Source: Phallusia mammillata (Eukaryota). From it: a DNA stretch of 64,000 bases. The DNA lies in the NCBI GenBank assembly GCA_965637545.1, contig OZ281500.1:6758001-6822000 (forward strand), in the 5' to 3' direction. This document shows, piece by piece, positions 33,277 to 36,074 of the stretch. The notes below the pieces were generated by a model. It was given only the letters and a program-made list of their open reading frames with translations. It did no database searches and was not told where the DNA came from. A program made the translations under genes and the position numbers. Position 1 is the first letter of the stretch; each line of letters opens with the position of its first letter.

Positions 33277-36074
33277 TTAATCCCCTGCAGTTTGGCCTGA
33301 TGGGGCAGGCATGCTCCTGATGATATCACTGTCACCTGTAAAAAGTATAATTCAATTGTTTACTAGTCCTTAGCATCTAAGCACTACAAGACATTACGCC
33401 ACTGTTTACTGGTGGACTTTCAGTATAATATTTGAATACAACATGTCCTGTGGCCAAGTCTTAAATCCATGATGCATACACAGCAAAATAGTAGTTATGG
33501 CATGGCCAAGAATATATAGCTCCTATGAAGTAACTTACTGGATCAGTAAAATCACAGTAAGAGTTGCAGGGAGCAAACACATTTAAACCCTTGTTAAAAC
33601 GTCAAGTTTATCATGAAGACACCTTACACTAATATTTTGCAATAGCAAGGTTTCCAAAATGTCCCACAATTTTAATTGTATTGTTTTTAAAGCATGATCT
33701 TGCACAAACAACGATGGTAAATAAATGCAACAGCAAATCTCCACAATATACCTGGATCTGTGATGGTTAACGTGCATACTCGGAAATATTTTCCACAAGC
33801 TGTTCCTAACTCAATGTTGTTGCCAGTATAGTGGTGGACACCAGTCTTTGCAAGCATTGCATAATACTCGATCTCAGATTTTCTGAAAGAATGAAAAATA
33901 TGTTATGTTCCGCACTGAAAATAACCCTTTCTGCCAAGCACCATCTTGACATGCCATTTACAAAATATTGTGGAAATTGTAAATTAAAGGAAACTTTGTA
34001 CACCACATGAAATATTGTACACAACAGCCGATAAAGACTCTGGAAACAAAAAATGTCAAATTGGAAGGATGTCTAGCACAAAAGCAATATGACTTGGTAA
34101 CTTTAATGAATAACTCATTTGAATGGAAACTATACCAAAGAAAATCAGGTTGTTCTATTGATCACTGTTTTTGCACAAAAGATTCTTTTTAGACTGATAA
34201 AATAAAATTATATTTTATGTGAATCCTTTTTAATCATCATATTCATCTGCCGAATCATCACCGTCCACTTCCTCATTTTGAAGAGCCAATTTTTCAAGTT
34301 CTTTCTGCAATTCCATGTCATCCACATCTGTTACAACTTTTGGTGCCATCTTTACATTAAACATTCCGTCAGCAGCAAGTATTGTCTCCTCAATGCAATT
34401 CAATGCCTTCTGTAAAGCTTCCACACCCAAATTCCGATCCAAAGACTGAGTTGTTAGAACATACAATGGGGGAGCAATAAGGTTAATCTTAATTTTGTGT
34501 TCTTCGGTTGAACATTCCACTCCTGTCTTCAGAGCACGCTTTACAGCATCTACACCTTCATAAGCATAACAAGAAACTTCTACATCTGACCGAACCTTCA
34601 TAGCTTGTGGTGTAAGTCGCCTTTGAATATTTTTTAGCAGGAGCTTTTTCTCGGGTTCGCTTATTTCAAGCTCATTTAAGATACTTGTGTCCTCAATTAC
34701 CTTTTTGAAAATGTCATAAGATGCTGGGTATTTTTCATTTGCTCTTTTGTACTTCTTGTCAAAAGCCCAGGCAGTACGCTGAAAGAAATCTTCAAAATCA
34801 ACCTCAATTCCTTCCACATGAAGCAGCTCGACAGTGTGTCTGAGAATACTGTGAACACATTTTGCCTTGGAATATTTGTTTTCACACTTCTTAGCTTCCT
34901 CTGGTGAAACACGCCGTTTCGAAAGATCAATGTATCCCTTTTCCTTGTCTACCCTAATTACAACTACACACTCATCTCGACCAACACGGATCAGTTTGTT
35001 AATAGATCGAATTCTTCTTCTTGACAGTTCACTGAGAAGAATCATGCCTTCAATGTTGTTGTACTCAAGGAGTCGAACATAAGCTCCCATCTCCGCAATG
35101 GACTGTACATTTACCATAACCACATCTTCAACCTCTGGGAACTTGTCAGCGTAGAACCGACAGGAAATGGACATGTTTGCAGAAGTTAGTAAGTTTAACA
35201 GAACTATTAGCCTTACCCAAACCTGTATTGATGGATATATTATTTGTTAAATCATTGAGATTGACAAAATTAAACATACTTTTAAATTAAGGATTAAATG
35301 TCTCACTGTGTCCAACAGACAAAATCCATTGAGGGACAATGTCTTTAGGTCACTGTGAACTTATGTTCCTCTTACTTTTACCAAACTGTTACAAAAATTG
35401 AATACAGGTCAGCCTTATTCCAGAGGATTACAACTTACAAGTATGTTACTTCCCTAAAAAGTATTTTGAAACTCAAACCAACCTTAAAGCGGGACAATTT
35501 GAAGCAAGAATGACAAGTTTTGCTTTTCCCTGCCTCAAATTCTTTAAAGTTTGACGATATCCCAAGTGGTATTTGCCACTTTTCATCACCAGTCGAAGTC
35601 TGGCATTGATATTTTCGATCGCCTTTTTCTGTTGACAGGCAATAGAGAATGTTTTGAAAGAAAAATGAACCCAATATGAAAAACTTTTTACAAAATTTAG
35701 ACTGGAAATGTAGCCTTAGCTTAAATCTGTAATGCAATGCAGCAGAACAGTAGTTATGGCAAGGCTGTAATGCTTTAGCTCTTTAAAAGTAACTTGCTGT
35801 GCAATGGACAATGACAGCAAGGGTTGCAAGGAGCAAACACGAAAAGTATAAAACATAGAGGTCGACCAAAGCAAAGCTGGTTTGGGATTTGTAATGTTGT
35901 AACTTTGTATTTTGTTTGGTTTTTGGCTTTACAATTAACACAACAAGGAATACAATTTGACAAATAGTGCAAGCTGGTATCAACATAGAATAGCGTTTTT
36001 TTTCTAACGTTTACATGCTAACTTTATACAAAATGTGTGTACTGTGTAGTCCTTACTTGTTTCTTGGCCGGCAT
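33277..36074 (-). CDS. RPL30: 60S ribosomal protein L30 (eL30), 117 aa
   Basis: Coding exons 36057-36074 (MPAKKQ), 35483-35628 ([24 protein letters not shown]...CPALR), 33752-33882 ([18 protein letters not shown]...DP) and 33277-33335 ([10 protein letters not shown]...*). There is a pyrimidine-rich non-coding exon 1 at ~36214-36255 and AATAAA at 33266-33271. Not in the ORF track. Confidence 0.97.
33446..33578 (-). ncRNA. H/ACA box snoRNA, RPL30 intron 4 (paralog of 35706-35838)
   Basis: Two-hairpin fold, ACA 3 nt from the end and 14 nt below the pocket, 133 nt. Pocket sequences TGCAAC/TTACTT and GCCATAACT/TTTAAG are shared with the paralog. The H box is imperfect (ATATAT). Confidence 0.75.
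34230..35174 (-). CDS. EIF2S1: Translation initiation factor eIF2-alpha, 314 aa, intronless, nested in RPL30 intron 3 on the same strand
   Basis: Complete ORF: [18 protein letters not shown]1 domain, [13 protein letters not shown] (Ser51 site), [11 protein letters not shown], acidic C-terminus. Confidence 0.98.
35296..35429 (-). ncRNA. H/ACA box snoRNA, RPL30 intron 3, upstream of EIF2S1
   Basis: Hairpin 1 closed by CCTCT/AGAGG, H box ACATAA, hairpin 2 TCAC/GTGA with upper stem AGACA/TGTCT, terminal ACA-TTT; 134 nt. Confidence 0.7.
35706..35838 (-). ncRNA. H/ACA box snoRNA, RPL30 intron 2
   Basis: Hairpin 1 GCTC/GAGC with CTTGCTGT/ACAGCAAG, H box AAAGCA, hairpin 2 AGCCTT/AAGGCT, ACA-TTT; 133 nt. 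Confidence 0.85.

Follow-up and report, generated by a model that had tools for sequence, protein, structure and literature searches.

The locus analyzed here lies in a 64,000-nucleotide (nt) stretch of the Phallusia mammillata genome (GenBank assembly GCA_965637545.1, contig OZ281500.1, positions 6,758,001 to 6,822,000), referred to below as the window, and the element in question is a candidate 3' splice site in front of eIF2-alpha (EIF2S1), a gene placed inside the ribosomal protein gene RPL30. All features are carried by the minus strand, where RPL30 is divided into five exons and eIF2-alpha occupies intron 3. Exon 1 (36214..36259), a 5' untranslated region (UTR), was read from the sequence with a presumed transcription start; it has pyrimidine tracts at 36259-36251 and 36246-36237 and a donor GT at 36213-36212, and ribosomal protein genes of Ciona are reported to start transcription in a pyrimidine tract (PMC4691747). 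Exon 2 (36057..36104) has its ATG at 36074 and codes for MPAKKQ, and exon 3 (35483..35628) is followed by the donor GTTGGT. Intron 3 runs from 35482 to 33883 and contains an H/ACA small nucleolar RNA (snoRNA) and then the eIF2-alpha open reading frame (ORF). Exon 4 (33752..33882) follows a strong acceptor, a pyrimidine run with CAG at 33885-33883, and exon 5 (33245..33335) carries AATAAA at 33270-33265. The eIF2-alpha coding sequence (34230..35174) is intronless and encodes 314 amino acids plus a stop without any interruption, with the Pfam domains S1 and EIF_2_alpha. The sequence ATTAAA (34102..34107), located 123 nt past the stop and still within RPL30 intron 3, is the likely poly(A) signal of this gene. 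The eIF2-alpha gene was thus found to lie entirely within a single intron of a same-strand host.

An initial annotation of the window had reported an AG 48 nt ahead of the EIF2S1 ATG, and direct reading confirmed this AG at 35223..35224 (part of a CAG) in front of the intact, intronless ORF of 314 amino acids. TTAAC, which from its sequence is a possible branch site, was found at 35246..35250, about 24 nt before the AG, and the 48 nt between the AG and the start codon (35175..35222) contain no ATG and would form the leader of the eIF2-alpha mRNA body. It had also been stated that the site is weaker than the RPL30 exon 4 acceptor; the site is indeed weak, with pyrimidines at 9 of the 17 positions from -20 to -4. 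The window sequence alone gives no proof of an acceptor; the site is raised above chance because it recurs in ten other tunicate sequences. In all of these (10/10) a pyrimidine-tract YAG was found 19-50 nt ahead of the eIF2-alpha ATG, and their tracts are strong, mostly 71-82% pyrimidine, with a chance of about 8% (0.08) per 35-nt stretch for a site of such strength. The CAG followed by GTTT in the window is common to the species of sequence L017. With its position kept in relatives and an RNA-assembly boundary nearby, the AG at 35224-35223 very probably functions as a 3' splice site.

Several other motifs were observed around this site. A TAG lies at 35199-35197, and GGTAAGG at 35216-35210, 6 nt past the candidate acceptor, resembles a strong 5' splice site. 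The relatives have TAG-GT 8-17 nt past their first acceptor, and the motif might act as another acceptor or bind U1. A donor-like motif after the acceptor, represented by GGTAAGG in the window and TAGGT in the relatives, was considered and given up, as it is better read as a second YAG-G acceptor. Except for exons and snoRNAs, nothing in intron 3 could be aligned between species, and no conserved promoter block was found upstream of the acceptor. In Styela clava (L010 7860-8000), where the gene has several exons and is not nested, a pyrimidine-tract TAG was found 21 nt ahead of the ATG. Processing at an acceptor just ahead of the start codon may therefore predate the nesting.

A single eIF2-alpha locus was found in the whole 240-Mb assembly, and likewise a single RPL30 locus, so the nested eIF2-alpha is the working gene and not a spare retrocopy. 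The same arrangement, a single-exon eIF2-alpha between RPL30 exons 3 and 4, is present in seven tunicate genomes including that of the window; the six others are Ciona (L008), Clavelina (L009), a close relative (L002-L007) and three tunicate assemblies (L037-L039). In Styela clava, eIF2-alpha has seven coding exons and is located on another chromosome, and RPL30 intron 3 does not contain it. The protein tree places every nested species outside the Styela clade. With a sole intronless copy here and a multi-exon orthologue in the outgroup Styela, eIF2-alpha looks like an old retrocopy that replaced its multi-exon parent. The simplest history would be that a retrocopy entered RPL30 intron 3 in a common ancestor of the Ciona/Clavelina lineages and that the parent gene was then lost. 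No poly(A) or target-site relic of retroposition was seen: on visual inspection, the spliced leader (SL) agrees with the 16 nt ahead of the AG at just 6 positions, and no A-tract follows the 3' end of eIF2-alpha. The lack of such relics is expected at such an age and weighs little.

The nearest named eIF2-alpha proteins are those of Ciona intestinalis (81%), Clavelina lepadiformis (81%) and Styela clava (78%), which marks the genome as that of an ascidian. SL trans-splicing is reported for about half of the genes in Ciona, where it mostly takes the first acceptor near the start codon (PMC1488885, PMC11155486). The Ciona 16-nt leader followed by the donor GT, tested against its reversed control, gave 3,789 matches in the 240-Mb assembly versus 5 for the control. 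Many of these genome-wide matches (about 3,800) are dispersed singly, and many may not be SL RNA genes. A tandem array with a 553-bp unit carrying leader and donor was found at G000:C3:11108338-11147465 (L036), and in one unit the leader is followed by GTAAGC, a short stem and then a U-run, the order expected of an SL RNA gene; a search of the SL unit against Rfam gave no match. The matches of the Ciona type together with this unit indicate that the machinery for SL trans-splicing is present in the genome. An intronic operon made by SL trans-splicing was one of three outcomes proposed in the initial annotation. Its trans-splicing part fits an ascidian with Ciona-type SL RNA genes; the layout is not that of a Ciona-type operon, as RPL30 goes on with exons 4 and 5 past eIF2-alpha and no poly(A) signal precedes the window acceptor.

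Traces of the message itself were sought in assemblies and runs that appeared RNA-like. Such assemblies, from several studies, hold 46-73% of the region 33700-36300, which is about the share expected for the eIF2-alpha message plus the RPL30 exons. Of 37 words sampled from 35067-35482, exactly 11 occur in each of six small assemblies from two studies, whereas an assembly confined to 35067-35222 should contain about 12; in deeper assemblies, 43-100% of the sampled words of this interval are present. The part of the message that is collinear with the genome ends reproducibly at about 35211 +/- 30, and a long unspliced leader is therefore ruled out. For a planktonic relative, an unspliced contig shows the AG, and three metatranscriptome contigs from that species start 1-2 nt past it. 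An RNA contig from a planktonic relative (L028 1-32) has 32 nt of unrelated sequence joined within the eIF2-alpha leader, where there is no AG; it could be a chimera or an allele. An older Ciona gene model, P0121 (344 amino acids), follows eIF2-alpha as far as ...EEVDG and continues into RPL30 exon 4 out of frame, which would be equivalent to a junction from near 34255 to 33882 in the window; it could be a chimeric transcript using a cryptic donor in the 3' coding end of eIF2-alpha, or an artefact of prediction. No entry for Rpl30 or eIF2 was found in the available supplements of the Ciona papers.

Three introns of RPL30 carry H/ACA snoRNAs on the minus strand. The one in intron 3 (35296..35428) consists of a hairpin, an H box ACAUAA, a second hairpin and an ACA 3 nt from its end; its fold has -36.4 kcal/mol (z -2.4), and in an alignment it is kept in five species with compensatory changes at five pairs. 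Hairpins, boxes and covariation therefore all agree with an intronic H/ACA snoRNA. The snoRNA in intron 2 (35706..35836) gave only a weak SNORA50-like match in Rfam (E 0.12, far under the gathering score), and it is a paralogue of that in intron 4 (33446..33580), with 73% identity over 122 nt. From the 3' end of the snoRNA to the AG, the distance is 73 nt in intron 3, 77 nt in intron 2 and 110 nt (measured from the ACA) in intron 4. Placement of snoRNAs about 70-80 nt before the 3' splice site, coupled to splicing, has been described for box C/D snoRNAs and is not known for the H/ACA type. The similar spacing in introns 2 and 3 had been taken as a sign that the candidate acceptor is used. The distances themselves were right, while the argument built on them failed: between the intron-3 snoRNA and the acceptor lie 73 nt in the window, 86 nt in the L017 species, about 722 nt in Ciona, about 750 nt in Clavelina and about 1,450 nt in the L004 species. 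Splicing-coupled placement was therefore rejected for the intron-3 acceptor, the distance not being kept among the five species and the snoRNA being of the H/ACA type. As to the neighborhood, RPL30 adjoins a PDIA6-like thioredoxin gene in both Clavelina (L009) and Styela (L034), syntenic with the window, and ATR comes next in Clavelina, while in the window ATR exons are found at about 27.3 kb.

The explanation that we favor, with a probability of about 0.55, is that the body of the sole eIF2-alpha mRNA begins at the conserved acceptor, the leader being trans-spliced at 35222 and ATTAAA serving as the gene's own poly(A) signal. In this process the 16-nt leader would be joined in trans to 35222, and the message would end at ATTAAA (34107-34102), still within RPL30 intron 3. 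The site is most likely an ordinary ascidian SL acceptor, and in favor of the leader as donor, the window species has no room for a private 5' exon. As for the precursor, we lean to the RPL30 primary transcript, because in the window species the acceptor follows the exon-3 donor by just 260 nt and 133 of these are snoRNA. A small share of RPL30 transcripts would then be diverted by SL trans-splicing and internal polyadenylation, and the remaining ones would be cis-spliced from exon 3 to exon 4. Since RPL30 is unfinished at the nested gene, processing into the two mRNAs would be mutually exclusive for each transcript. A splice switch would exist only if the RPL30 transcript is the precursor, to which roughly one chance in three can be given. 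The fullest version, in which the RPL30 transcript is the sole precursor and yields either L30 mRNA by joining exon 3 to exon 4 or eIF2-alpha mRNA by SL addition at 35222 and intronic polyadenylation, with an H/ACA snoRNA from the same intron and a retrocopy origin kept in several ascidian lineages, is put forward tentatively and is somewhat unlikely.

Several points weigh against trans-splicing at this acceptor. A YAG as good or better arises by chance with P of about 0.25 per 35-nt stretch of the window. The assemblies and runs were taken as RNA by guess, and their boundary, good to just about +/-30 nt, is no less compatible with transcription starting near 35208, on the downstream side of ATATAT (35240-35235). 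A junction of the spliced leader with the eIF2-alpha mRNA was seen in no species, and the RNA contigs of the relatives are without the leader; a query of 13 nt of the leader, a gap of 15-45 nt and the start of eIF2-alpha found no match in metagenome and metatranscriptome contigs of the Joint Genome Institute (JGI), and a second contig scan with the leader of a relative matched only an already known contig. Furthermore, an acceptor that has an unspliced upstream donor in the same transcript is reported to be cis-spliced and not trans-spliced (PMC1488885). With an RPL30 precursor, competition of exon 3 for the acceptor is therefore to be expected, and from this rule it follows that either transcription starts within the intron or the leader competes with the exon-3 donor. 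Such competition with a cis donor has been reported at some first acceptors having weak donors (PMC11155486). The exon-3 donor is GTTGGT in the window, in Ciona and in the L004 species and is strong in three other nested species. A weak exon-3 donor as a mark of nesting was thus discarded, as GTTGGT occurs in just three of six nested species and the others are GTAAGT-like.

The first branch of this rule leads to a different explanation, in which transcription of eIF2-alpha starts from its own promoter in RPL30 intron 3, past the exon-3 donor, and the leader is added without any switch or coupling to RPL30. A start at such a position leaves the acceptor unpaired, as the rule for trans-splicing needs (PMC1488885), and room for a promoter exists in Ciona, Clavelina and the L004 species, where 0.7-1.5 kb lie between snoRNA and acceptor. 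In the window species the same interval is just 71 nt; it holds the TATA-like stretches TTTAAAAG (35289-35282) and ATATAT (35240-35235), yet no TATA-like element recurs in the relatives and no non-coding block upstream of the acceptor, besides exons and snoRNAs, is kept between species. A private promoter with SL addition is therefore considered unlikely, though by no means negligible. The TATA-like sequence could also mean that no splicing takes place at all, with a core promoter in the 71-nt spacer, a start near 35208 and a fortuitous AG in the window species. A pyrimidine-purine step is found near 35209, about 30 nt past ATATAT, the RNA-assembly boundary of 35211 +/- 30 fits this equally, and the site is no better than chance in the window genome. 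However, it would leave unexplained both the strong pyrimidine-tract YAG at the same place in 10 of 10 other tunicate sequences and the CAG plus GTTT common to the L017 species, and again no TATA-like element is conserved, which makes an unspliced message quite improbable.

Cis-splicing of the acceptor mainly to RPL30 exon 3 or exon 1 was the substance of the other two outcomes in the initial annotation. It would give a chimeric mRNA with either a 57-amino-acid L30 upstream ORF (uORF) or a terminal oligopyrimidine (TOP)-like leader, possibly regulated by L30. In favor of this, no unpaired donor is nearer than that of exon 3, and transcription past exon 3 reaches the eIF2-alpha acceptor before any other. 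The reading-frame arithmetic was verified: exon 3 joined to 35222 reads ...PALR-F-G-stop, a uORF of 57 amino acids whose stop lies 38 nt before the AUG, and a stop comes within 1-3 codons past the junction in the window, Ciona and Clavelina, although this uORF end is not kept in the L004 species. The Ciona model P0121, with eIF2-alpha and RPL30 exon 4 combined, hints at chimeric transcripts unless it is a prediction artefact. On the other hand, the mature-looking contigs of the relatives end at the acceptor and do not continue into RPL30 exon 3, and a 57-codon uORF would make for inefficient translation of the essential factor behind it. When the exon-3 frame was used for a word search, a collection of 5.8 billion proteins gave no 57-amino-acid L30 form, which is a weak test; the organism's own RPL30 protein was not found by that search either. 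A mainly cis-spliced acceptor is thus very unlikely, and trans-splicing of the leader at 35222 is retained as the preferred explanation.

The question matters since eIF2-alpha is the control point of the integrated stress response, and in these ascidians its sole gene sits behind a conserved acceptor within a ribosomal protein gene, both facing the same way. If eIF2-alpha is fed by the host transcript, the locus would be a compact natural test of the choice between cis- and trans-splicing at one site and would show how a retrocopy gains expression without a promoter. If the RPL30 transcript is its sole precursor, the supply of a key regulated initiation factor would be tied to the transcription of a ribosomal protein gene. 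If eIF2-alpha has its own promoter, it would be an ordinary SL-trans-spliced nested gene. Ciona shares the layout and is experimentally tractable. Feedback by free L30 on the acceptor had also been suggested, by analogy with yeast. Yeast L30 autoregulates the splicing of its own transcript by binding a kink-turn that lies at the first intron's 5' splice site. The likeness is limited to the gene name, the idea being that free L30 could alter the splicing of its own transcript. No such kink-turn was found here, although no search aimed at it was made, nothing in the window data points to feedback, and L30 feedback on the window acceptor has no support.

The closest known counterparts are the SL acceptors of Ciona (Satou et al. 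2006, PMC1488885; Yokomori et al. 2024, PMC11155486). As in those genes, the acceptor is the first of its gene and stands some tens of nt ahead of the start codon, with AU-rich sequence upstream, and the same 16-nt leader occurs in the window genome. Unlike those, the window acceptor lies within an intron of another expressed gene on the same strand, so that donors are located upstream in the host transcript. Ciona operons without intercistronic DNA (PMC1488885, PMC2760879) are similar in that two genes on the same strand could share one primary transcript and that the downstream gene is single-exon behind an acceptor, single-exon genes being enriched in Ciona operons; there, however, the upstream poly(A) site abuts the downstream acceptor, while here RPL30 exons 4 and 5 lie beyond eIF2-alpha. 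In retrogene replacement, such as that of amphioxus SYCP1 (PMC5803294), an intronless copy is likewise the sole gene, and the outgroup Styela keeps the multi-exon gene elsewhere, but the insertion here was into an intron of a very highly transcribed gene. Parallel nested intronic genes, as surveyed for example in the Hormiphora genome (PMC8527503), also have a whole gene in one intron of a same-strand host. The present pair differs from them in that RPL30 and eIF2-alpha are both single-copy and essential parts of the translation machinery, that their nesting is kept across several ascidian lineages, and that the same intron also yields a snoRNA.

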